A DNA stretch of 64,000 bases from Botryllus schlosseri. Its lineage: Eukaryota. The stretch is taken from contig CM119380.1 in the NCBI GenBank assembly GCA_051294905.1, positions 19,778,001-19,842,000 on the forward strand. The letters run 5' to 3'. The notes under the pieces are model-generated. The model was not told where the DNA came from, did no database searches, and worked only from the letters and a program-made list of their open reading frames with translations. Positions 4,602 to 21,701 of this stretch are shown piece after piece. The translations under genes and the position numbers were made by a program. The first letter of the stretch is position 1. Each line of letters starts with the position of its first letter.

Positions 4602-7600
4602 ATGTCCTTTTTGGACGAGCAGAAACTCTACGATGACCACAAGTACCGCAGCTACGCAAGCCAAATCGAGAAAGCCTTGAAGAATTTCGAGTATTCGACA
4701 GAGTGGGCCGATTTGATCTCTGCTCTCGTCAAATTGAACAAAGTACTACTGTCGAACACGTCTTACAAGATTCTCCCCAAACGAATCACCATAGGAAAAA
4801 GACTTGCACAATGCCTCCATCCTGCTTTACCAGGCGGCGTCCACATAAAAGGACTTGAAGTATACGACACTATTTTTAAGATAATTGGTCAGAGACAATT
4901 GGAAATGAATCTTCACATATTTGGTGCGGGGCTATTCTCTCTTCTTGCAAATGCATCTATGCAAGTGAGACCGGTTTTGCTGAATGTGTATGAAACCCAT
5001 TTACTGCAGCTTGGAGAGAGATTACGTCCAAGCTTGGATGGTATGCTTCTTGGATTATTATCGGGTCTTGAGGAAGGGTCTGAGCATTTCGATAGGATCA
5101 CACTGCTGCTGAATACGATATCGAAAAATGTCGGTCCGCAATATTTCTACAGCAGCTTGTGGCGGTGTGTCCTATGCTCTCCGACTGGATCTATTGTTCG
5201 TCTAGCAGCTGCCCAGCTGGTTTTGAGGTAAGTTATCTATCGAATGTTCTAATAGATGCCATGTTATAGAGGACTCAGCAATGGCGGGTTTGCTAAAAAA
5301 CAATATTCGTTATTTTATGCATCAAGCTTGATATTGATGCTTAAGTTTCTCCATATATCTTATCGGAATTCCACATCAATGGAGCTATCAATTGTTATAA
5401 TTATTTAAAAATTGGCGGAAGCCTCAAAAAATTATTCATTTTTAGCATTTAGACCCGCTGATAAAGACATTGAAGTAGGCAGTATATCATAACATGATGA
5501 AATAATTTAGTATTGAATTCGAAACTTGTTACGATTTAACTCCCAGTCACAATGTTGATGTCGTGCTCAAAGCTCCAAGTGCATTAATAGGGTACGGTAC
5601 ATACAATATACATCTCATAGATAGATTATCATCATGAGCCTCCGCTGGCTGCTAGCCATCCGAATTCACCGCCTTGTTGTCTCAGCTACAATATGATACG
5701 TCGCTCCTGAGGTATGAGGAAAATGTATTTACAACACTGTGTGGCAGATTTTATACCCTCGTTCATCTTGCAGACGGCCCATATAGTCATTTCTAAGGTA
5801 TTTCTGGTTTCCAATTGAAACCATTGCACTCGGTCTATATTTAAATATTCTGGTAGGATGTTGAGGAAGGATTGTGGAATATGTTTGGGCCTTACAGGCT
5901 GAGGAGAATACCATTTTTGATTTTTCCACTCATAGGCACATGTCGGAGCATATCTGTCAGTAGGTAATCGACAGCGATGTAATTGGAAAATTTTCATTTC
6001 AGACAATTTGACAAAAAGAAAATGACAGACGACCAGCTCCATCTCATCGGGCTCGACGTCGATATAATGATTCACGCTCTATGCGAAGCGCTACAAGACG
6101 AGAACGTACTAACGCAGAGAGCCACTCTCGATGTTCTAATCTTCTGCCTCCCCCTGTCGTCGCTACCAGTTTCAAAATCCGACGCCCAGCAAGTTATGTC
6201 TTGCGCGGTAAATATATTACTGCGCAGGGACATGTCTCTGAACCGCAGACTTTATTCGTGGCTGATGTGCATAGACCTGACAAAGTCTAGCAGCAGCACT
6301 ACAAGTGCGTCGTCCGAGTATTTCGAAAAATATGCGCAAGAAATTTTGACCAACGCGTTACGCGACGGAATTTCGACGGGCATAACTGAGTTTCGGGGTG
6401 CCTGTTGCGTCAAGACCGCGAATTCGTTGATCGGTACGGAAGTAAGATTGCTACGTATCTTCACTAGTCTTCTTGATAAATCAGATATCGGACCGGTTGT
6501 GCTGAACGATATAATGCCGGGATTAATTCGTTTGATTGAAACCGTAGATAACACTTATAGAAAAGTTCTATCCGCTGATCATCGGTGTAAAAAGTGCGTT
6601 ACGACACAGTCTTCGCACGATCGTTGCGGCCGGGCTTTGTCAGAATTCGTTAAACTAGTCAACCTGTTTGTGAACTCTTTCGAGAGCGACTATATCTGGA
6701 ATGTACTCGGGGAATATTTTGTGCAATCGTGCGTCGCGTCGACCGACCGTTTGGAACCGGACGAATCCGTCTTTGCTGTGTCGGAGATTTGCGATGTGAT
6801 AAAGTCCGTTCTCGACATCGTGTCGATAGAGACAATCGTAGACATTCAGACGTTGTACCTTCCCGAGTTACTCAACAAATTGTTTGTGCAATTGACGGTC
6901 AGCTGCGGTACCATGTCCGAGGAAGACGTCGCCAATTGTCTGCGTATCTCCACCGCGATGTTGAACCGCATTCAGCCCGTTCGCAACGAACGTGAATCCG
7001 ACGACTCGGCGATGAAGTCGCCTATTTTGTCTTGCGTCAAATCATTTCAGGATTTTATCGCCAATTTCGTATCTTCTAAAATCATCAGCGACGTAGATGG
7101 TATGTCGCGGTTTATTGAAACCATAAAGAAACCTTTGCCTTCCCCTATCTCGGATAACGCGTGTCGAATCGAATTCAAATCGTGTGGCAGCTCAAATTCA
7201 GTGCTGTTGGAAGCTTTCCAAGATTCCTGCCGGCTTTTAATAGACATCAGTTGCTTCCCCACGTTGTCTACGCCGAATGCTGTTCGTTCGTCTAACGAAA
7301 CTCGTTCCGACGCTGTCCCTCAATGGCTACTTTGCCTTATGGCGTGCTCCTGCCATAAAGAAATCAAGTCTACGCCGCCTGGCTCCACCGAGGAGTCCGA
7401 TTACTTTTACGAGATTAGGAAATCCGCGTGTTCCGCCGTGCTGGAATTGCTGGCGGCGTCGCGGGCGCATCACGGCAACAACGGTAGCGCTGCGGCTGCC
7501 GTTATTTCCGTAGTAGTGCCGGCACCGTTGACGGCGAACGAAATCGCATTTGTGTTTGAACAAACTGACTTTGTCGAAAAGGCCGGAGCAATTCTTTGGA

Positions 7601-10600
7601 ACGAACTAGCGGATGAGCCTACAGGCCGCAACAGGTCTGCACTGCAGCGCTGGTCACTGTCTCGAAATCTTGTCGAGTTGCATGAACTCTGCCCATCGGA
7701 CGCTGTGGAACGTCTGTTGCTAGGCGACTTGCTAGACTTAGATCAGGCTAAGCGGGTGGCGGCAATTGAAAAGTTTGCAAAGCTCTGGCGTCACATGCGA
7801 GCGGGCTCGCGGAATCGCGGCAAGGACAAGTGTCTGAGCCGGTGCCTTTTCGCGGTGCTAGACCAGCTTGACGCAGGCCGGTGCGCTCCGTTTCCATGTC
7901 GGCCTGGTCCGAAGGACCAAGGAAATGCGCTAGCGTCTACAACGGTATCGGTTTGGTTACGGCAAGCTTTGGAGGAGGGAGACTTACCTCGCGTTTTAGA
8001 GCCTTATTTTTTGATCACGCTCGAGCAAAACACAAATCGCAAGTCGCTGCAATACGTTCTCCGCGACGCGAACTCTACTGCGCCCGACGAAGACAGGATA
8101 GACGACTTTGTTCGACGTCACGAAGAAAACACACAGGGCGCCGCCTGCCAGACTTGCATCGACTCCGAGGGCGAATTCGACGAGGCGCCTTTTTCGTGGG
8201 CCGACTACCGGGGCTTGTCGGCCGAGTCTGCGATTTCAACCGGACTGTGCGAGGTACATCGTCAGATAGACAGAGAGAAACGCCGGTACGACCGTCTTGT
8301 AGCTTTACTCACGCTTTCGGATGATCTCGAAAATGCTGACGCGTTCGCAAGTTCCGAGGAAGAAGACTTGAATTCATGGGCGGCCGGGTTTGTGAGCCTG
8401 GTTATCGCGCAAGCGATGCGGCATTACGAGGCTGGTTTAGGCGATAATGACGATAAAAACAACAATGCAGATGACAATTCTTCCGCCGGTTCTTCGCTCG
8501 CGACAGAAGCTATTGAACTCAATACGTCTTTCGTGACCAACGAAAACCCCTTGTTCAGTCATGTTTTGATTTATCAAGAACAGTTCGACGCCGGTCGCGT
8601 GCTGTATGGCTTGCGGGCTGTTCTCACTATCGCTTCTGCGCATCCATCTGTATTTATATACTCGGCATGCACCACTTCGTTGTCGTCGAGCGAAAGTTCT
8701 TATTCGAACCTCGTGCAGGAACTCCTGGTTAGGCACGAGAGGTCGATCGAACAGGGCAGGTCTTTTTATGAGGCGACGCCGGCCAGTTTGAAAGGCGCCA
8801 TGAAAAACCGAATGCTGATCGAGGCGCTGATCTCCGTGTGTCTGTACTATTTGAGATCGGCGTTTCGGCACGATGCCAAATCGAACGGCGCCGATTCGAA
8901 CCACGAGATACACACTGTCGCCGCCAGGCTGTTGAAATTTATAGTGAGAGAGCTTAGGAATTTAGCGCGAGAAGACGTGGCCCGTGCAAAAGGGCCGAAA
9001 TCGTCTTCAGCGAAGCAGTTCTCTGCGTACGTCGTACTGGTTTTGCAGCGGCAGCAAGTGCAGAGCGTGGCGTTAACGTGCCTCTTGACGACGATTTTCG
9101 CTCTAAAAAACCACGGGCGCCTGGCCGAAGACGAATACAGCCTGTCGAACTACTCGGGGCACGATGCGAACTTGAATTTTGACGAGGAAGCCGCGCGTTT
9201 CGGCCGTAGCGATAATTTAGTGGAGAGGTACCTCGGCAACGACGTGGCGCACATTGCCGCCATGTTTTCACACTTTTTGGAACTCGTTTTCGAGCTGGTG
9301 ATGCTCGAGAGGTACGCGTTCTCGAAAGACCGCAAGCCTCACAGTACAAATAATGATGAACCTGCGGGCAGCCCTGGCGTGGTCATGAACAAGAAACGCG
9401 GCAGTCTCGTCAAGCCCACATTGAAGAGATCACACAGGCTGTTCAGTCATCTGCTGTCCGCTTCGCACCAGTATGACTCTGACCTGCCTTTAGCCTCACA
9501 AAAAGTCTTTGTGTCTACCGTTTTAGAAGTTTACCGCTTGGAACACCACCCCTCGCTTCACCAGGAATGCTCGATCGGCCTACACTCGGTTTTGGACTGC
9601 CTGGGATCTGCTCTTTCCGGCACGGTGCTACCAGTCTTGCTCCAACAGTGTTTAAATCTAGAGAACGCAACCAAAATGATATTGAAAGGATCACGACCGT
9701 CGCTGCCTCCGTGCTATCTCGAAAATACGATCGGCAGTATCGTGAGACTGTGTCATTACTGCTTGTTGACAGAATCCAGTAACGGGAATGAAAAAATATC
9801 TGCTGACAACCTACAGGCTGACTCGATATCGCTGGTGTCCTCCAAAACCACACAATCCACTGGGAATTACAGTCTCGGATGGTTCAATTTGCTGAACGTT
9901 TTCAGCATGTCCAACGGGAACAAGTCCACGTCCGTTTCTAATGACGTGGACTGTTCGGACGGCGTGCGGTCCGCCAAGATTTCAATTCTCAATAACTTGG
10001 CGAGGATAGTGTCTTGTGTGTGTTTCCTATGGAAAGACATCGTCATGGCAAATGCGGACAGGCTAGTATCTGGTGACGAAGTCAAAGGCGTTTCTTATGC
10101 TATACTACAGCTTTTGGGCCCGATGGCTTTTCGCTACGGCGAGTATTTGCTGGTGGCTTTCTCACTGGTGTGGCAGGACCGCGAAGTAGACAAGACCCCG
10201 TCTGATTTCACAAAATCGATGCTAACCTCGTCCCTGGCGAAGCCTAATCCGAGCTTGGATCATATTATTGATCTCTTGATGGCTGTCAAACTGCTATCTG
10301 CAGAAATGTTCTTCTCCCTCGTGAAACAAGTCATCAGAAACCCACCGCCAACGGCCAATGAACGAAAGGACACTAGCCTACACGAAAGCCTGTTGCAAAT
10401 GCTGCTGTTTTACATGAGAAGGCTGAAGCCCGGAGCCCTGCTGGAAAACTGGAGCGGATTTCTTCCGATAATGCAAGAAACTCTGGCGATAGGACCGGTT
10501 CAAAACAACCAATGCTATTTCACGGCGGACAACCCCGTCACCGCAAACTGCTACTTTCTGCTCATGTATGTAGTGGCGGAGTATGTAAAGCGCGCGGTCG

Positions 10601-12303
10601 CTTTTACTGGGAAGAAAGAGCAGAAGGAACTGCAGGACATTGTGGCGAAATGTGTGGAGGCTTGTAACGTAATCGCCGGGTCTTCTCTCGAGCAAGGCAC
10701 GTGGATTAGAAGAACAGTTTCGGTGCTGCCAGGTCCGCAAGCACCCGAAACTTCTGTGAAGACGCACAGAAAAACGGAATCGCAATCGTCTCTCGACTTG
10801 ACCGATGCTAACGCGGAAACGCAAAACGAGCCGCAACTGCACGCGTCTTCCTCCGACACTATGGTCGCGGTTTTGGGGCAGAAATCAGAGGAGAATAAGA
10901 ACCGGGCGGAATCCGAGGGGCTCGCGAGGCCCACGTCGCTACACCAGATCGCTCAGCCCGCGATAAGCTCTGTGAATCTGCGGAATAGCGTGAAAGCGCT
11001 GAGTGTTCTCGCGGAGGTAGTCGCTAATTTGCTTGACGTTGTCTACAGCAGTGAAGAGAAGGAAAAGATTGTCCCGATCCTAGTGCCGATCATGACTAAT
11101 GTAACACCGTATTTACGAAATCACAATAAAGACAACAGCCCCAGTTACGGCGCCTGTGTGTCGCTGCTGTCTAGCGTAAGCGGGTTTCAGTACACGCGGC
11201 GCGCCTGGCGTAAAGAAGTGATCGAGCTGTTCATGGACGGCGCGTTTTTTCACATGCCGCCCGGGTGTGCGGACGATTGGAGAAACATAGTCGACAACCT
11301 GATGACTCACGACAAGCTCACATTCAAGGATATTATGTCGAGAACTACGCTTTCTAAAACCGGTGGTTCCACGCCGACGCTAAGTTTGTTTTCAAACAAA
11401 GAGCAAGAGCTGGAGTTGCGTGCGTTGCACATCAAACGGCTGGCTTTCATCGTGTTTAGCAGCGAGGTGGATCAATATCAGAGGCAGTTGCCGGAAATTC
11501 AGGAACGCCTCGCCGAAAGCTTGAGGCTGAACAACATCCCTGGGGTACAGTGCAGGGTGTTTTTGTGTCTCAGGGTTCTGCTAGTACGTATTTCCCCACA
11601 CAGCCTGACGTCTCTGTGGCCAACGATATTCACAGAGCTTGTCCACGCGATGACGCAGCTCGAGCAAGCCCTGCAGCCGGCCGTTAATACTGAAAGCAAA
11701 AGGTCTCGGTTTAGGGCTAAGCTCGGAAAGGCTACGTCGCAGAGTAGCGTCGATCGCAAAACTGTGATGACTTGTTGGGACGATATGTATTTAGCGGCTT
11801 GCAAATTGTTGGACTTGATCTTGTGCTTGCCTTCTCGGTGTGTGCCGCAATTTCAGTTGTTCAAATGGAGCTTTGTTGGCGATGTCACAGTCGATGCGAC
11901 ACAAAGTGACTCTATGACTAATCATTACCATCCTATCGACAAAAATCAGCCTAGCGGCGCTGGTACTCCGGTCGACATCGATCCTGATAAAATCGAAACC
12001 GGCTTTATACCGCACTGCGTGCGTATACACAAATTGTTTTGCGAACTATATCCAAGCCGGCGAGAAAGACGATTGACGGTCGTACCGCAAAAACCACTTC
12101 TTAACGTGACCAAGCTTCGGTGTTTGGAGCAGCTTCACCCGTTTTTTAACACCATCACCTCGCCTGACTATTTACTGAAAATGCAGCGTTCCCAGGCGTC
12201 GTCTCAGCAAGACTACAAGTCGCAGATTGTGCCCAACTCGCAATTGCCGCTGCCGTTAGTTGAGCGGACTTTGGAGAGAGATTTCGTGAGGAACATGCTG
12301 TGA
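4602..12303 (+). CDS. DOP1: Dopey family protein (DOP1A/DOP1B-like, endosome-Golgi trafficking scaffold), ~2308 aa; exons 4602-5227 and 6003-12303
   Basis: Dopey N-terminal motifs (KYRSYASQIEKALKNFEYSTEWADLISAL, KRLAQCLHPALPGGVH, LLRRDMSLNRRLYSWL) and C-terminal motifs (IVDNLMTHDK, KRLAFIVFSSEVDQYQ). The donor AG|GTAAGT at 5228 and acceptor TTTCAG| at 6002 join in phase 2 to give ...QLVLR/QFDKKKM... Confidence 0.95.
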
Positions 12304-13242
12304 TATTTCAAAAGAGTAAAACCAATCTGATCTAATAGCTATTGATGATGTATGTTCAATGATATGTCAGTAGAATTTTACACTATTTATCCGTTATAAC
12401 GCTTTTTCAATGATTATATTTCTTAGCAAAGTTATGAAATCCTTTTCATTTGATTCATCAACTAGACATATTCGGTGAAGTATCATTCTTTGCACATATC
12501 CAGTTATATTTTGCGACACTGGTACACAGACTGCTTTCACAAAAATCGTAAGCAATGCTGGTTGATAGCCCGTACGTGTGTAAAATTATATTTATGTTAC
12601 GAATTATCGAAATAAGTTTCCGATTTATTGATTGCAATCTGTGTGTGTCTAATGTTTACTACCAGTTCCTCTGCATTTCACTAAACGTACCGATGATATC
12701 ACATAACAGCAATATTTCCTCACTGTGTACGTGACCAATGTCTATCATTTCCATATTCCTCTTGAATATATCATAAACAGAAGCGCCTAAACCTTTGTTG
12801 TCTGTATTTTGCGAGTCTTTAGTTTGAGGTCAAGATATTGATTGTTTGAATTTGAGTTCAGCTCCATAGCAAACTACTGCTCAGTTCAATGGACCACTGT
12901 CTGCCAATGCTTAGTTGATAGGCTTCCAAATTTATCATCAAGGAGATCTAACCTTCATCAATGTTCTGTGATTTTCATATGCTACTGGCATCTCGGAAAG
13001 TTCAATACGTGTAGGTTATCTCCGCATCCGAATCACCGAGTATACCGCTTGGGATCTAGGGTCTTACGTCATATGCATTATCCCCTGGTTGTAGCCAGTG
13101 ATGATCCACATTTTCTGCGTGAAGCAGTCTGAAACTGGTGTTGAAGCATCAAAGCCTGCTACTAGAATACCACCATGTCTTCATAACAACACACCGGTTC
13201 ATGCCAAACCCAGACAGATCGATATTTCAGATACACATATAT

Positions 13243-13587: not shown

Positions 13588-13872
13588 ACATATATGAGAT
13601 AATAGGATCAATTAAGCATATAGCTACAATTAAGCATATAGTTAAAGTTCCATTTTAGATATTAGTGGAGGTAGATCCCACCCCATACCGCATCATTCAA
13701 TCTGTTACCCTAACCCCAATGAAATGTCGCTCGAAAACAACATTTCCCATTAAGATCTTGCGTACGAAAGGCACGAAATTTAATAAATCAACACTGAAGA
13801 TATCTTGTGTAACAAAAGTAATATAATTTTAAACAAGACAAGACTGCATAATTCCAACACAAAGAAACCACG

Positions 13873-16800
13873 TCACTTATACTTTAACACCCGGTACCTG
13901 TCCTTCAAGTTGACCGCGGTGCGATTTTCGAAGCGAAACCTCTCGAGGATACTTTTCCACATGCCATCGCCGAACAGCGTGACGCCGGCCAACAAATTAT
14001 CATCCTCGTCGGCAGTCCATTTTTTTCTGCTACTCTGCCGACGCCTGTCGCCACTCGCAAACGAGGCGGGGTCGAGTTTTTTAGGGGCGTCATCAAACAG
14101 TTTTGCATCATCTTTCGACATCTTCACGGGGACTCCCGGCGCGTCGTACAGCCTTCTTTTTCGGAGATATTTCGACGGCCCGTTTAAATCTGCTTCTTCG
14201 GACGATCGGTTACCTGCACTTGCTGTAGATCGCGTCAAGTAGGGTAGTGTTCGTTTTCCCGTACCCTTGTTATCGTCAACGACAGGCTCCTGCGATACCC
14301 GAGGCTGGGGTTTATCGTCCTGTATCTGTGGACTTGAAGACATGTTTTCACAAGCAGGCGACTTGGAAGTAGGCCGCTTTCGTACAGTACCCGAGTTTGC
14401 GACCGGTTGCAACTCGTGTGAACTAGTCCTACGTCGTCTCACATTTCTAAAAGAATACTTCCTAGGGGTAGGCTTGCGTTTTTCGGCTGAACTTTCTTTC
14501 GCGACATTGCTGGAACTTTCAAGATCTCCACCGGAAATAGGCGACTTCTCGGCGCTTGGTGTCTGTTGCATGTTTTCTGTGTCATCTACCGGTTCTATTG
14601 GAGTTGACGTCAGGACAGGCGAAGATGTTTCGCCGCCCGTCTCGGTATTGTCGGCAGACACACTTTTGCCGCAATCCAGTGCCTCGAGAAGTTCTTGGGT
14701 GGATTTCGGCTTCGACGTTGACGGTACGCCTTCCGCGGACATATCGCCACATTCCGTCGTCTGCTTGTCTGGCAGGTCGGGTGCCTAGAAGGAATTCAGT
14801 TCATTTCCCTATGCACCATCAAGTAAGAGCTCTAAAATGTCGTGGACATTGTAAAGAGAATTAGACAGTAGCCTATGTGGTGATCGAAGTAGTTCGGGTT
14901 ACTGACAGGTGTGGTCAAGTAATTCATTATTGTAACATCATTACTCGTGTATTTCTAATCAAGTACGAGTACCAGTAGGTATTCGGTAGGTATTTCGGTA
15001 AGTATTCTTAGCCTAGTTTTTGAAAACTATAGAAGTCGTCTAAAATCCGAACTGTTTAAGCAAGTGGTAAGTACTTCAAGCCCAAGTAACATGATTAGCA
15101 GCACTACAAATATGTACAATGTACAATAGGGTGGAGTGAAAATAACTTTTTTTCAAATCGAAAAAAGGGGGTTCTTAAATCTCGACAAATGACCTAAAAC
15201 CGCAATAAAATTGATTTTAGGGGATTGCCCCTATTTTCCAGCCGGCGATCCCCCAATTTCTGGGCGCGAGGGGGGGGGGGGTAAAATTGACCATCTCGAC
15301 AACCACTGGTCGTGCAGTCATGATATAGCTCAAAAGCTGCCAAAACACCATGTTTCTGTCTGTCTCAAGAAGAAAGGTTTCTCTATTGTGAACACAAAAC
15401 GAGTTACAGCCAAAAAACACTGAAATTTTGAAGCGGGTGAATGGCGGGAGTAACTAATAGGGTGGAGTGAAAAAAAGAAAAATTTGAATTTCAAAAAGTG
15501 CATTGATATTTGGTCTCAAATCTCGAATGAATTACTTCTATCATAATTTCAGGTTCCTGCACCCTCTAGTGGCCGTGCAATTTCACCGAACGAGCCGAAA
15601 ATAGCCAATTTTGCCATATCGAGATACCCGCTTATGCTAGAAAGCTAGTTTTGGGCTCAAAAGCTGCGGAAGCAACATGTTTCTATCTCACTTCCATAGA
15701 ACTTTGTCTTGAAAATGTAGAGAAAAAAGTTACAAGCAAATTATTGACTTTTAGATGGCCATTAAAATGTCGGTTGGTTTTACCAAGTTTGCAATGCCAA
15801 TTTGCATGTTACAATTTGTTACATTGCTGCTTTAACAACAAAATCTTGTTTGGCGGACCCACAAGTTGATTATGTGTAAGGCTGTGGCATCTAGGTATGG
15901 TGTGAACGTGAGGTTCACGTTCGCGTTGTGTGTGTGAACCTCAGAAATTTACAGGTTCACGTTCACAAACGAACCTTGGTAGGTTCTGCACTGTGAACCT
16001 TTTTCATATATTACAATTTTCACTTCATTATAACATCTTTGGTTGAAATTTGTTTTGAGGTATCATGTACATTAATATAGGCTATCACTTCGCTGAAATA
16101 TTGGGTTGGAATTAGCAATGTGACGTCACGAGATTCATGATAGCGTTCACACAGAACCTTTCAAAATGGTTCGCAATCACACGAACCTGAACCTTTCAGA
16201 GGTTCACACCATCCCTAGTGGCATCCCATCCCCCTAGGGCTTGATTATTCCTTGAACTATGAAGCGTACAAGGGTACGTACAAGTGTGTCAGCTATCCCA
16301 CCAACGTTTCGTGTGTTATTAATATGTCAATGCGTATCCCATTTACTTTTAGCTTTCATTTCAATGAAGGGGTGCATGAAGTAAAGTATGGCTAGTTAAG
16401 CGGGGAACAGAAGAAAGAAGTAGGCCTGCTTTAGCTAGCTGTTGGCATTTTCACTTGAAAGAGCTACTTCAGTTCATCTCAGTTAATTAGCAATGTCACT
16501 TCAAAACACCAGAAAGATTGCTTGGAAAATCTTGCACCGATGACAACTTGGATCACCTCTGACATAAAAGCATACTGCGTTCCACGCAATGTCCCTTGCG
16601 ATAGTCCTACTCACCGCCAGAGGTTCCTGAACCGTAACATCTCGACAGTCGCCCGATACGTCCTCAGTTTCGCTGAAAACGCTTTCCGTATCCTCGTTTG
16701 CAGTTAAATACGCTGACGACGCCGGCGACACCGATTCGGAAGTACCTGTCACCGTCAAAATATCGCTGAAAAATTCCGTAAACACAGTTGCGGCCAGCCA

Positions 16801-19800
16801 GAGATTCCAAATTAGATTTGAATCAGAATTATACCTACATCGTTTTTTTTTTTCCAAATTAGACTGGAATTCGAATTACAGATGCACGGCATTTTTCCAA
16901 ATCAGATTAGAATGACTGAATTCACGAACACTCGAAAATTGAATCAATTTCAGTTCATATCAAATCAGAGTTCATCCTCAAAAGCCCGAGAATGGCAAAT
17001 GTCTGCACAGAGCATCGCGCCATTTGTTCACAACCGCCGGTCAGTGGCAAGTTACCCGTCAGATATGTCAGGATTTTATATCTCAATTCCAAAATGCAAG
17101 AAGTTGGACGCTTTTCTAGTGAAGGGGCTCCAGAGGTGGTCAAAGTAGTCAAGAAAGCTACTCAAGTACGAGTAGAAGTACTCCTTCCACGAGCCACCTA
17201 AAACTGAAGTAGAAGTAGAATTTTGACCACCTCTGTTCGATATAATTTTCACTGTTGAAGCCTTGGAACCTTGATTGGCGGTATCGTAGCATACGAAACA
17301 TATGGTACAAAGCTGCGATTGTTAATCGACGGTGGACGTAGCACATTTCCAAAGTCATTATTATCCCACAACCTTATCACTAAGTGGAATGAAATCGGTA
17401 TGGTCGAAAAAATACTCAAGTATCTTTTATGATCTGGATAACTGGCATTATATTCTTTTTGGTGGCATACTCGGCACATGTTTGAGCTTTGACGTATTAC
17501 ATTCTGCTATGACCAGAGGTGGTCAAAGTAGTCAAGAAAGCTACTCAAGTAGAAGTAGCGACGAAAAAATATACTCAAGTACAAGTAGAAGTACTTTTTC
17601 AACAAGGCACCGAAAACTACTTGAAGTAGAAGTAGAATTGACTGACTTTAAATCTACTCAAGTAAGTAAGTAGATTTTAAAACAGTCTTAATTCGTTCGC
17701 ATGGACTGTCAAAAGCTGCAAATTGAGCTATGCGAAAGGAGCAGAGAGCTTGATTCGTATTGATGCATCCCAGGAGGTATCAATTTTCGACAGAATAAGC
17801 ATTCTTTCGCATCGTGGGATGCGAATTATAGTATTGATATGAAAATACGATACTATCCCCATGTTTACTAGAAGACCCCGTTTTAGAGAATATCATGGCA
17901 TGGCGCCCTACCCCATATTATAAGGCCCCAAGTTTAGGCAAAGAGCAATACGGAGAAGTTGTATCGGATACGGTTTCAACACTTTGCGCGATTAGTATAC
18001 GTTAATAACAAATATTGTGGATCATAAAAGTTATATTTAATCTAGCTTCATTTTCGGAAAGAATTGCTTTTATGCTTCAACATGTATGTTCTGCAGACAA
18101 AAGAACTGGGAGTAATTAGTACTCAAAGTATGATACTCGGAATTGAAAGCGAAATACAAATACCCCTTTACCTAAATTATATTCACTGATACTTTCGTGA
18201 AAACATATTTGTCACTCAGAGATCGAACTTTATATAGTTGTCAGCCGATGTGATGAAAGAAATATGTCGTACACGACAGAAATAGAATACACTAGGCCCG
18301 ATTTTGACATAAATCTTCTGACTGAACGTCTTCCGTTGAACGCGGTATCTGAACCACCTTGGCGTGTACGACATATTTCCTTCATAACATCGGCTGACAA
18401 CTGTATAAAGTTCGATCTCTGCGTGACTGCTGGAGCGTGAAGTTGCTGTGGAAATTTCAATATATTGCAGCTCCATTACGGCAGCGTTCAGACGGAACGG
18501 CTGCGGCCAAAATTTTTTTTTCATTTTGCCATTCAATTTGAGACCACGTCATTTTTAGAGTGCAGTGCCCCTTTAATTAGAGAAAGTAAACATCAAATTT
18601 TAAACGTATGTAGAAGTTTAAAACGCATTTATTTGTGTGGTGTCACAATTGAGAGTTCATGGTCTACTTTGGGCGTACGCCACAATAGTGCAAGTGCTAT
18701 AAGAAATTGCTCGGACAAGCTATATGCGAAAGCTACTGAGACTTTTACACAAACTTCGTTGAATTCCGACACTGCAATTAAGCGACAGTTGGCAGTACGA
18801 TAGAGGCTGTTGTAAATAGCAATGCCCGATTTCTTTCAAGGATGCCGAACAATCACAATCAGGTTAGTGTGCTTCAACAGGACTTCGCCTAGCAGAATCT
18901 TCGACAGAACCACGTATAAATATCTAGCATCAAAAAGACACCATTAAATTTACCAATATTACATTCAAGTTGGAAGCGTTTGTCGTAAACTCGCAATTAA
19001 ATTCAATCAAAGTCAATTTTGGTTTAGAAAGTCCGGCGGTCTGCAAAGTTTTTTTTTCAAAGTTTTACCGGTCTGCGCGGTCAAAAAGGTTGAGAACCAC
19101 TGCATTATACTGTTCTCCAGTAGTATTTTCAGCAAAACAAGATTAATATATTGGAATTAAAATTAATGTGCATAGAAAATTTCACGAACCAGATCAAAAT
19201 TAGATTACAGGCTAGCTAGGGAATCATCTAGTTGTACAAGTATAGCAGCAGCATATCAAACACCTACTTGCACGCAATTCCAGACGATTTCCGGGCGAGT
19301 CGGGCGCAGTAAAAAATTGCGCGCTACCGCACGCCGGCAGATCGTCGCAGGCTTTCACGTTATCTTCAAACGGCTTTCGAGCGACGCCGGAATTATCGCC
19401 GGACGAAGTTTCGCTGGAAAATGAAATTTCGGACTCCGGCAAGAGCTCGAGGTGGATCGAACCTTCGGTGATTTTAAACAGTTCGGCCGACATGGACGCG
19501 GCAGACTCGCTACTCTGACTGCCCTCGACCGGAGTGGATTCTTGATTCGACAAGCTCCCGATGACCTGTTCTGGCGACGCGCGCTTTTCACGGACACCGA
19601 TGTCTCGGTCCAAACCATCTCCTGGGTTACTTTGGTTCGAAATTCGACCAGACAGATTTTTACACGAGTCTTTCTCCGCCCCCGAATCCGGTACTTCCAA
19701 ATCGGGAGTCTCCTCGATTTCGGATTGCCTCGTGGATCCTGAACTCGCGTTTGAAATTTTAGAGGCTCGAGAACTAGCTTCGACTATCTTGTTCTCCCGC

Positions 19801-21701
19801 GATGCGACTCGGGTTAAATCGTTTGTATTTAACGACGGATTAGGTTTCGTTTTATTTGAAGCGCTTTCCTCTTTTGCATTTTGTGTGGACAGGTTGGAAG
19901 ACGCTCTGCTACGACCGTTTGGTAGCAGCTTTCCGTTTGCGTTCTCAACATATTCGGGTTCTGTAGATCTGCGTCGTAAACCGTGTATCGAGGGTAGACT
20001 TTCGTCGTCCGAAACGACAATGGCGGCTCCGGATGTTTGCGGTATATCTTTTTCTACTGGCGCAGGCGTCGTGTCGCGAGTCGGCGATGCATTGCTTTTA
20101 TTATTCAACCAGTCCAGAACAGTCTTGCGTTTTGAAGTTGTTTCATGACCGTCATCCGATAGATCGTCTATGTCAAACGTGCCTGCAGGCGACGCGTTCT
20201 TACTGCGATTCGGTTGTAAATTCGAATTTCCGGTCGACTGACGATCTTCCATAGTGCGATAAACATGAGTTAATATCGCCTCGTATTTATCAGAAGCCAC
20301 GATGTTCCCATCTTCGATTTCAACATCGCCCCTTCTACACAGTGTGCGCCAGCGATCCTTCAAATGGGTAGGCGTTCGGTAATCGGGAAACGGATACTTT
20401 CGGCATATATCGAGCCATCTTCTCCCGAATGCCCGCACCCCCATGATAATGTACGCGTCTTGCAAAGTGGTGAAGGTGTGCCTGGTACGCGAGGAGTACG
20501 CCGTACTTGTAGTAATGATCGACTGGTTTAGTGCGTTGTTAACTTTTCGGAATTGGATCGGAATTTTTAAGAGCTTGGAACTAGCCGTATGCAAACGCTC
20601 TTTTCCGATTTTTGTGCGAGACGGTGACGGAACCCCGGGTTTTGTATTATCATAGAACAAAGGAGGAGGCATGGCTTTGGGACTTGAAGTGACATTCCTG
20701 CTAGGATGAGAACTGACGCCTTTTAACGGTTGCAACCCGCTGTTTACTTCAGGCGTGAAGTATTTCGAGGTCACATCCGAAGCTCTGGCGGTACCCGGTT
20801 TGGAAACGTCACTGTCGCTATCTGAAATTACCTCGTTCTCTCGGTTTGTATTTGGCGGGACGTGTTTGGTGACCGATTCTGACGGTGCCATCGATTTAAC
20901 GTTCGTAATTTGGATCAATGTGATTTCGTCACTCGACGATCTCACTGCGTTTTTCTCTCTTTCTTTTAACTTGCTTCGATTTTTGACTGATCGCGGCTCC
21001 TCGGAAACTTCAGCCGACGATGCGGCCCCGTTCTCCGCCACAGAGTCTTGCTGTTTCATTGATTTTGTTTTGCGACTGTTTTTCTTCGAGTGGTTATCCA
21101 ACTTGTCTACTATTTTCTCTAAAAATGTACTCGGACATAGGAGCATGAACTTTTTAACGAGCTCTTTTATTCCTTCCGCATATTTGGTGTTGGACTTCAA
21201 CCATTTATCTGCAGGTAACAATCCCTTTAGAACACACTCACAGGCATGCTGTTGCGGCGAAGTCATCTTGTGTTTGTATCGTTTATAAAGAACTCTAGAC
21301 TCTGCTATGTTTTCCGACGATGCGATCACAGTTCGGGCTGACACTTTGTCAATCAACTTCTTCAGTATTTCTTTAGCTTCGCTATTGCTGCTCGCAGGTA
21401 ACTCGTCGACCGATTGCGAAGCGAGTTCCAGTTGGGAGATACCCTGCACCATAAATTGGTATCTCTCTTTGTACGTGACCTCTTCCTTTTGCTTGTGAGC
21501 TTGCTCGAAGCAGGTGAGAAACTCCAGAATATATTCCCGAATGTCCGATTGTCGTACCGACTGTGGTAGCATATGATGTGAATGATCCTTGATCACATTG
21601 TGGTAGTAATCAATGTCGACTTGGCCGGCCAAATACATTTGAATTGCATTGCAGACATGTTGCGTGTAGAGCCATTCAATAGGCTTTGCAAAGTCTTCCA
21701 T
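13873..21701 (-). CDS. TERF1/TERF2-like: Telomeric repeat-binding factor (TRF) family protein, ~1166 aa; TRFH-like domain plus two telobox Myb domains; exons 21701-19264, 16765-16615, 14784-13873
   Basis: The N-terminal ~200 aa resemble TRFH helices (EYILEFLTCFEQ; KELVKKFMLLCPSTFLEKIVDKL, compare TRF1 ...EKSSTFLMKAA). Myb 1 at ~20335-20495 reads ...GVRAFGRRW...RTPTHLKDRWRTL. Myb 2 at ~13876-14040 reads KKWTADEDDNLLAGVTLFGDGMW...RTAVNLKDRYRVL. Junctions are phase-compatible: AG|GTGTTT to TTTTCAG| (phase 2) and GCG|GTGAGT to TTCTAG| (phase 0). Confidence 0.82.
15892..16217. mobile_element. hAT-type MITE in TRF intron 2
   Basis: TIR tagg(t/g)atggtgtgaac / gttcacaccatcccta; 8-bp TSD GTGGCATC at 15884-15891 and 16218-16225; internal gaacc/ggttc subrepeats. 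Confidence 0.9.
17131..17670. mobile_element. Two copies or fragments of a MITE family with cagaggtggtcaaa termini and aagtag subrepeats
   Basis: 17131-17235 has inverted termini cagaggtggtcaaa / tttgaccacctctg. A second copy starts at ~17514. Related fragments lie at ~44780-44830 and ~48610-48770 (-). Confidence 0.7.
18211..18427. repeat. Long inverted repeat (arms ~65 bp, loop ~87 nt), MITE-like hairpin in TRF intron 1
   Basis: gtcactcagagatcgaactttatatagttgtcagccgatgtgatgaaagaaatatgtcgtacacg (18211-18275) pairs with 18363-18427 with few mismatches. Confidence 0.85.

Follow-up and report, generated by a model that had tools for sequence, protein, structure and literature searches.

A TRF-family gene of the ascidian Botryllus schlosseri is predicted to combine a TRFH domain with two widely separated telobox Myb domains

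A 64,000-nucleotide stretch of the Botryllus schlosseri genome (hereafter the window; positions 19,778,001 to 19,842,000 of contig CM119380.1, assembly GCA_051294905.1) carries, at positions 13873-21701 of its minus strand, two open reading frames (ORFs) that each contain a telobox Myb domain, and the question raised by this locus is whether the two belong to one gene and whether its product is a telomere protein of the TRF family. TRF1 and TRF2 are homodimers formed through their TRFH domains and bind duplex TTAGGG through their Mybs, and tunicates are the closest living relatives of vertebrates. Animal TRFs were described by Myler et al. (2021; PMC8653790) as proteins with a TRFH domain and a C-terminal Myb, with one TRF2-like gene in each of 16 invertebrates; the same authors found no tunicate TRF orthologue, which left the timing of the TRF1/TRF2 duplication open. 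Poulet et al. (2012; PMC3315331) had noted a single TRF-like telobox in Ciona genomes and did not describe the protein. Beyond these two papers our literature search, which left most subscription journals outside its reach, found nothing on a tunicate or ascidian TRF. Here we report that the locus is a single, expressed, three-exon ascidian gene and that the predicted protein, judged by its sequence and modelled fold, belongs to the TRF family, whose members bind double-stranded telomere repeats, and carries an additional telobox with a structural extension.

Both ORFs (21701-19224, 825 aa, and 14742-13873, 289 aa) are there as a preliminary description of the locus had claimed, each with a Myb, and the sequences LKDRWRT and LKDRYRV are present; there is no N run between positions 13000 and 22500. 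To positions 13860-19800 we assigned the contigs of three runs from three studies (X1, X3 and X6) and the raw-read run X23, the RNA kind of the runs being guessed (recorded as "RNA?"). Two joints are present in the contig sets of X1, X3 and X6 alike, one from 14783 to 16614 (cut +1) and the other from 16742 to 19265 (cut +3), both with plus-strand ends CT..AC, and exon 2 is covered exactly over 16614-16742 (+3), between them. Since canonical GT..AG introns have been removed, the contigs derive from spliced RNA. Intron 1 is spliced at 19268/16745 (CAA/gtaggt ... acag/G), and the three joined coding exons (Table 1) form an open frame of 1158 codons, encoding a 1158-aa protein. A single 2802-nt contig of X1 matches 19800-19265, 16742-16614 and 14783-13860, in all three exons, with 0 mismatches. 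It runs on for 146 nt past 13860, into the 3' untranslated region, and for 1067 nt past 19800, and thus reaches over the internal Myb (20483-20328), which places both Mybs on one assembled transcript. The raw-read run, sampled at ~6% with an exon depth of 1-2, gave no junction reads, and the splice evidence is that of the assembled contigs. Across 14 putative RNA runs (four studies, one organism) between 1/12 and about 1/2 of the sampled words of 13873-21701 were present, and the best five runs, at 0.41-0.47, come close to the exon share of this interval. The N-terminus encoded by exon 1 agrees with those of two relatives (P0001 and P0002, described below), and an in-frame stop lies 20 codons upstream of the ATG.

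These data settle the structure that had been proposed from the letters alone. Joining of the two ORFs through a middle exon is borne out by spliced contigs from three studies, and of the two predicted junctions 16615/14784 was correct. The other, 19264/16765, leaves the frame open (1166 codons), yet it is absent from the contigs, which use 19268/16745; the middle exon therefore exists, but measures 131 nt from 16745 and not 151 nt from 16765, and the protein is 1158 aa long instead of ~1166 aa.

Table 1. Features of the TRF-family gene and its neighbour in the window (positions count from the first letter of the window; aa, residues of the 1158-aa protein).
Feature	Position	Strand	Details
Coding exon 1	19268..21701	-	ATG at 21701; 811 codons + 1 nt; donor CAA/gtaggt at 19268/19267
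TRFH-like domain, all-helical	21069..21683	-	aa 7-211; AF2, Foldseek, VIA-align, hhalign
Internal telobox Myb and extension	20241..20483	-	Myb aa 407-458 (HLKDRWRTL), extension aa 459-487; RGDVEIEDGNIVASDKYEAILTHVY
Intron 1	16746..19267	-	2522 nt, GT..AG; high-copy repeats inside
Coding exon 2	16615..16745	-	131 nt, phase 1 to 0; RNA contigs in X1, X3, X6
Phospho-FFAT-like motif	16681..16719	-	aa 821-833, in exon 2; SSAYLTANEDTES
Intron 2	14785..16614	-	1830 nt, GT..AG; high-copy repeats inside
Coding exon 3	13873..14784	-	303 codons + stop TGA at 13875-13873; spacer end, iDDR-like motif, C-terminal Myb
iDDR-like basic-acidic motif	14089..14169	-	aa 1061-1087, ~35 aa upstream of C-terminal Myb; YLRKRRLYDAPGVPVKMSKDDAKLFDD
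C-terminal telobox Myb	13876..14031	-	aa 1107-1158, NLKDRYRVLK; Pfam, solved relatives, tree
Dopey/DOP1 homologue	5983-12303	+	one open frame of 2106 aa; orientation convergent with TRF gene

Exon 1 encodes the TRFH domain, the hinge, the internal Myb with its extension and the start of a Ser/acidic spacer. For the N-terminal 210 aa a TRFH fold is predicted. An AlphaFold2 (AF2) model computed from an 8-sequence alignment is all-helical (pLDDT 82.9, pTM 0.81), and in a Foldseek search of the PDB with this model ranks 1-34 are all TRF1 or TRF2 TRFH domains (TM 0.44-0.62 over ~210 columns), with weak E values of 0.04-0.4. In VIA-align the top 39 entries are again all TRF1 or TRF2 TRFH domains, at Z 12.8-15.4, with 182-190 residues aligned from Z 13 upwards; the scores are to be read with the shallow alignment, the predicted nature of the structure and the inflation of Z by helical folds in mind. 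The best of them is the TRF2 TRFH domain 4rqi_A (Z 15.4, 186/203 residues), followed at a distance by Poz1, another TRFH-like fold, at Z 10.6 and by unrelated chains at Z <=9.6. Against Swiss-Prot AlphaFold models TRF2 or TRF1 takes each of the first six ranks, and below these the match probability drops from 0.98 to 0.54. Comparison of profiles points the same way: hhalign matched the tunicate alignment collinearly to six vertebrate TRF2 TRFH domains over 176 columns (probability 77.6%, E 1.9e-5), and a hidden Markov model (HMM) built from eight tunicate N-termini found collinear matches in three vertebrate TRF2s (Xenopus 24-215, Pogona 44-232 and Phrynosoma 100-216), in ranges that coincide with their Pfam TRF domains. 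A feature search of the ESM Atlas with the N-terminal 215 aa was uninformative, returning only low-scoring bacterial clusters (best 0.67). The TRFH-like N-terminus anticipated in the preliminary description is thus supported by the AF2 model and by its matches in Foldseek, VIA-align and Swiss-Prot models, and we infer that the domain has diverged past the reach of BLAST and Pfam.

With transcripts and fold in hand, the chance that the locus holds a pair of independent genes, or that its product is a TERB1-like meiotic adaptor with N-terminal ARM repeats and a C-terminal telobox Myb, is very small. What could be said for it is that the 825-aa ORF has a genomic stop, that ORF callers list the two parts apart and that TERB1, also a long protein, has a TRF-like Myb at its end (PMC7227075). 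The exons are linked, however, by spliced contigs in three studies and have full-length counterparts in orthologous ORFs, and where TERB1 has ARM repeats at its N-terminus (PMC7227075) the protein described here has a TRFH domain, with no ARM repeat found by Pfam. We regard both readings as ruled out by the spliced contigs and the structural match to TRFH, and it is almost certain that this is one gene with a TRFH and two-Myb architecture.

Which of the two Mybs corresponds to that of a conventional TRF can be asked of the domains themselves. The C-terminal Myb (aa 239-286 of the second ORF) matches Pfam PF00249 with E 2.2e-9 and, among solved structures, is closest to the Mybs of human TRF1 (E 4.8e-11) and TRF2 (E 1.6e-9). 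In a maximum likelihood tree of 30 Myb domains, which spans only 52 columns and is limited in resolution, the tunicate C-terminal Mybs cluster with vertebrate TRF2 Mybs (ultrafast bootstrap 93, SH-aLRT 95), while the internal Mybs form a clade of their own (95/85) joined to the first Mybs of P0005, P0008 and P0011, members of a second tunicate family (93/79). A basic-acidic segment that precedes the C-terminal Myb aligns, at the same spacing, with the acidic W-containing segment of vertebrate TRF2 (window protein PGVPVKMSKDDAKLF, Phallusia EGEVMTWDEPIL, TRF2 EEKEVWSDEEELF), and the K(D/E)D..LF part is kept. An iDDR-like feature of this kind was the basis on which Myler et al. (2021; PMC8653790) called invertebrate TRFs TRF2-like. 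Because the C-terminal Myb groups with TRF2 Mybs and follows the iDDR-like motif, the sequences indicate that the TRFH domain, the iDDR-like motif and the terminal Myb make up an ancestral TRF2-like frame to which the internal Myb-extension module is a tunicate addition. The earlier view of the first ~455 aa as a complete TRF, with a further Myb appended, is therefore not upheld.

The internal module resembles the DNA-binding domain of TRF2 in its core and departs from it beyond. Over aa 410-453 it matches PF00249 with E 7.8e-5 and 23.1 bits, just below the cut-off of 24.4 bits, and among solved structures it comes closest to Myb chains of human TRF2 (E 2e-4). In the AF2 model three helices are followed by a beta-hairpin and a fourth helix, pLDDT exceeding 90 over residues 21-90 of the 110-aa piece that was modelled. 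Its Myb core superposes on the human TRF2 Myb-DNA complex (Z 8.9, 1.4 Å, 54 residues, 35% identity), TRF1 and zebrafish TRF2 giving similar results. No Myb structure covered the extension in superposition, and winged-helix regulators cover the whole module only loosely (Z 6.5 or less, 4.7 Å). Plant TRFL, TBP1 and NgTRF1 proteins (PDB 2ckx, 2qhb, 2juh) also have a telobox Myb with a conserved C-terminal extension, and phmmer aligns them to aa 403-487. Their extension, in contrast, is a single fourth helix where the model of ours has a hairpin followed by a helix, and they have no TRFH domain; Foldseek superposes NgTRF1 with an rmsd >8 Å over 80 columns and VIA-align covers the core only. A plant-type Myb-extension is not supported as the identity of the internal module by these superpositions, which reach no further than the core.

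These features bear on whether both Mybs read DNA. It would be possible, if rather unlikely, that in this TRF-family protein only the C-terminal Myb binds telomeric DNA and that the internal module serves protein interaction or binds nucleosomes or RNA, so that no four-Myb bridging would occur; the Myb of human Rap1, which is not a sequence-specific DNA binder, offers a model. The sub-threshold Pfam score and the conserved extension, which has no counterpart in TRF Myb-DNA structures, would fit such a role, as would the Phe that takes the place of the first conserved Trp in the internal Myb of the orthologue family. Set against this, no other part of the protein is as well conserved as the internal recognition helix, which also lies nearer to the vertebrate TRF helix than the C-terminal helix does, the core fits DNA-bound TRF2 Myb as closely as stated above, and basic residues precede it as in the N-terminal arm of TRFs. 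Conservation this strong in its recognition helix suggests that the internal Myb still reads DNA. The claim that both domains are teloboxes of TRF type with their recognition residues retained is supported, their nearest solved structures being TRF1 and TRF2 Mybs and the internal core superposing on the Myb of TRF2.

A search of related proteomes for the combination of a TRFH domain with two Mybs, which had been suggested as a check, was successful. In a word-indexed protein search the 825-aa ORF found only two relatives, P0001 (71% identity) and P0002 (33% identity). A profile of aa 1-500 run separately against 1.84 billion representative proteins gave 64 hits, the best named ones all ascidian and annotated as uncharacterised. 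The nearest named relative is that of Styela clava (RefSeq model XP_039265388, here P0003, 1162 aa); further orthologues are a 562-aa RefSeq model of Clavelina lepadiformis (XP_076807020), a 708-aa protein of Phallusia mammillata (CAB3261678, named after Ciona LOC100177249), and two full-length ORFs with both Mybs on cDNA-sized contigs, P0007 (1204 aa on 3857 nt) and P0025 (1022 aa on 3569 nt). Altogether the two-Myb architecture recurs in each of the three ascidian orders; it is present in Styela, Clavelina, Phallusia and four further relatives, and no TRFH plus two-Myb protein occurred among the non-tunicate hits of the profile search. Every orthologue follows the same order: a helical domain of 170-225 aa at the N-terminus, a low-complexity hinge, the internal Myb with its 30-aa extension, the Ser/acidic spacer, the basic-acidic motif and the C-terminal Myb. 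Helix 3 reads H-L-K-D-R-W-R-T-L in the internal Mybs and L-K-D-R/K-Y/F-R in the C-terminal ones, K-D-R-W/Y-R being kept by both Mybs in every orthologue.

The relative at 33% identity, P0002, allows the gene structure to be compared as well. It lies on L001, a 15.5-kb contig that holds an 824-aa ORF, a small ORF and a 306-aa ORF ending in a Myb, followed by a convergent single-ORF Dopey gene. A three-exon model inferred from this sequence has the donor GAA/gtaggt, intron phases as in the window, a 110-nt middle exon and an open frame of 1162 aa, so that exon order, donor sequence, phases and the Dopey neighbour are all kept.

Besides the orthologues we observed a second tunicate family, comprising P0004 (Clavelina XP_076817274), P0005, P0008, P0009, P0011 and P0015. 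These proteins have a helical N-terminal domain that weakly matches the TRFH-like HMM and between one and three modules of the internal "Myb + extension" type, which is thus conserved over the orthologues and a paralogue family; no TRF2-type terminal Myb and no iDDR-like motif was found in its members. The family may be paralogous to the TRF gene and specific to tunicates.

Between the Mybs, aa 491-1095 form a Ser-rich and acidic spacer (S 16%, net charge -22), as the preliminary description had noted. The wide separation of the Mybs that it emphasised is real in the window protein and is not a constant of the family: 701 aa lie between the recognition helices here, against 215 in Clavelina, 313 in Phallusia, 637 in P0025, 752 in Styela and 829 in P0007. 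The roughly fourfold variation of spacer length between species argues against selection for exact reach, and the disordered Ser/acidic spacer is a tether with short conserved motifs, not a fixed ruler. One such motif is encoded by exon 2. The pattern Y-[LMIT]-T-A-x-[ED] is kept in the Ser/acidic tract of the L001 model, of Styela P0003, of P0007 and of the paralogue P0005, and is absent from the orthologues of Phallusia and Clavelina. Phospho-FFAT cores with S/T at position 4 bind the MSP domains of VAP proteins (PMC7705450), and SSAYLTANEDTES fits this core, making it a possible motif for docking to the nuclear envelope. Exon 1 contributes further islands shared with P0002 in its disordered parts, namely MPPPLF (aa 344-349), IPxxFRK (380-386), VLDWL (528-532) and EYVxNxxGKxxPN (583-595), which are candidate partner docking motifs. 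A scan for [YFH]xLxP docking motifs found none that is conserved.

How does this protein compare with known telobox proteins? With vertebrate TRF2 and the TRF2-like TRFs of non-vertebrates it shares the TRFH fold at the N-terminus, a long hinge and a C-terminal telobox Myb (K-D-R-W/Y-R) that groups with TRF2, this Myb being preceded by a putative iDDR-like acidic segment. It differs from them in having a second telobox Myb with a beta-hairpin and helix inside the hinge, in a TRFH domain too diverged for Pfam or BLAST, in a hinge that is much longer (~900 aa from the TRFH domain to the last Myb), and in having neither a detectable Rap1-binding motif nor a basic N-terminal domain. Fungal Tay1 and Teb1 also carry two TRF-like telobox Mybs on one polypeptide; those of Tay1, however, are consecutive, near the N-terminus and without a TRFH domain (PMC7952879), whereas here they begin at aa 407 and aa 1107 (215-829 aa apart in the family) and follow one. 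As far as we could find the architecture is apparently undescribed in animals, and this would be the first TRF of an animal to unite two telobox Mybs with a TRFH domain in a single polypeptide. The preliminary description had called it unfamiliar in animals, which holds for published accounts, but among ascidians it is routine, in genes annotated as uncharacterised.

Taken together, sequence and models suggest that the gene is probably the tunicate orthologue of the single invertebrate TRF2-like TRF and acts at telomeres. Several observations weigh against this. Pfam, proposed at the outset as a check, recognises both Mybs (the internal one below cut-off) but its TRF model PF08558 does not match the N-terminus at E<1, so that the TRFH assignment depends on a structure predicted from 8 sequences and on a single comparison of profiles with moderate probability. 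The TRFH fold begins at about residue 7, and no basic or acidic domain lies ahead of it. Within the iDDR-like segment the W is present in 4/7 tunicate sequences and is M in the window protein, and the tree that groups the terminal Mybs with TRF2 has the limited resolution already mentioned. For the Rap1-binding motif there was no match to Pfam PF16772, and an HMM of six vertebrate motifs reached at best E 0.08 among 14 proteins. Finally, the existence of a second family with TRFH-like and Myb-extension domains means that this gene may not be the only duplex binder.

One rival reading would make the protein a TTAGGG-box transcription or insulator factor and not a chromosome-end protein, after the example of two promoter-acting proteins, budding-yeast Tbf1 (TRFH-like domain plus Myb) and fission-yeast Teb1. 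The failure to detect a Rap1-binding motif fits this reading, as does the recruitment of fungal TRFH-Myb proteins to non-telomeric roles (PMC7952879); modest-depth expression in several unrelated RNA studies is also in line with it, though compatible with both roles. It is opposed by the grouping of the C-terminal Myb and iDDR-like motif with TRF2. Tunicate telomeres, moreover, consist of TTAGGG. In addition, Poulet et al. found a single TRF-like telobox in Ciona (PMC3315331) and Myler et al. found no other tunicate TRF candidate (PMC8653790). We consider this reading distinctly improbable.

If the gene is indeed a telomeric TRF, the following sequence of events can be envisaged. An extra DNA-binding module would have been gained in the tunicate stem lineage. 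By analogy with TRF1 and TRF2 the protein would dimerise through its TRFH domain, and the dimer would engage the duplex TTAGGG repeats of chromosome ends through as many as four Myb modules. Four Mybs on flexible tethers may confer higher avidity, and one dimer could hold two DNA segments; that the four Mybs bridge distant tracts is a tentative extension of the same analogy that we hold possible though not probable. More doubtful still is the fullest version, in which tunicates would have remodelled the part of shelterin that binds duplex DNA, in which the only tunicate TRF would be a TRFH dimer with four DNA-binding modules, including two "winged" teloboxes (Myb, beta-hairpin and helix) that founded the second family and sit on a long disordered tether, and in which the phospho-FFAT-like motif, present in stolidobranch-like species and one paralogue, could dock telomeres to VAP at the nuclear envelope.

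With its TRFH fold, iDDR-like motif and TRF2-like terminal Myb the gene family is a candidate for the tunicate TRF, and the timing of the TRF1/TRF2 duplication becomes testable by phylogeny and by experiments in ascidians such as Ciona. Were the gene the sole orthologue, the duplication would post-date the tunicate-vertebrate split. The family is also a natural experiment on what Myb number and tether length do to the binding of telomeres and to the compaction or looping of DNA. Regeneration, whole-body renewal and ageing are studied in colonial ascidians as model animals, and telomere maintenance is of direct interest in all three.

Some minor observations concern the introns and the neighbouring gene. 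Just past the exon 1 donor, 19034-19232 shows a contig depth of 9-60, and no contig covers 18835-19033; the signal comes either from a repeat or from the retained start of intron 1, and retention would yield an 825-aa form with the TRFH domain and internal Myb only. At 15850-16247 and 17044-18635, within the introns, RNA-contig depth rises to hundreds or thousands (~10^3 at 17044-18635, in intron 1), with many mismatching contigs and internal joints, and these segments are high-copy transcribed repeats, transposon-like in character. The convergent Dopey/DOP1 homologue (Table 1) is 53% identical to the protein of Styela clava and 66% to that of L001. The neighbourhood is kept there as well, with Get2-like and LYR genes alongside, in a genome that is much more compact. 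So large an intron-free stretch is unusual for an animal DOP1.

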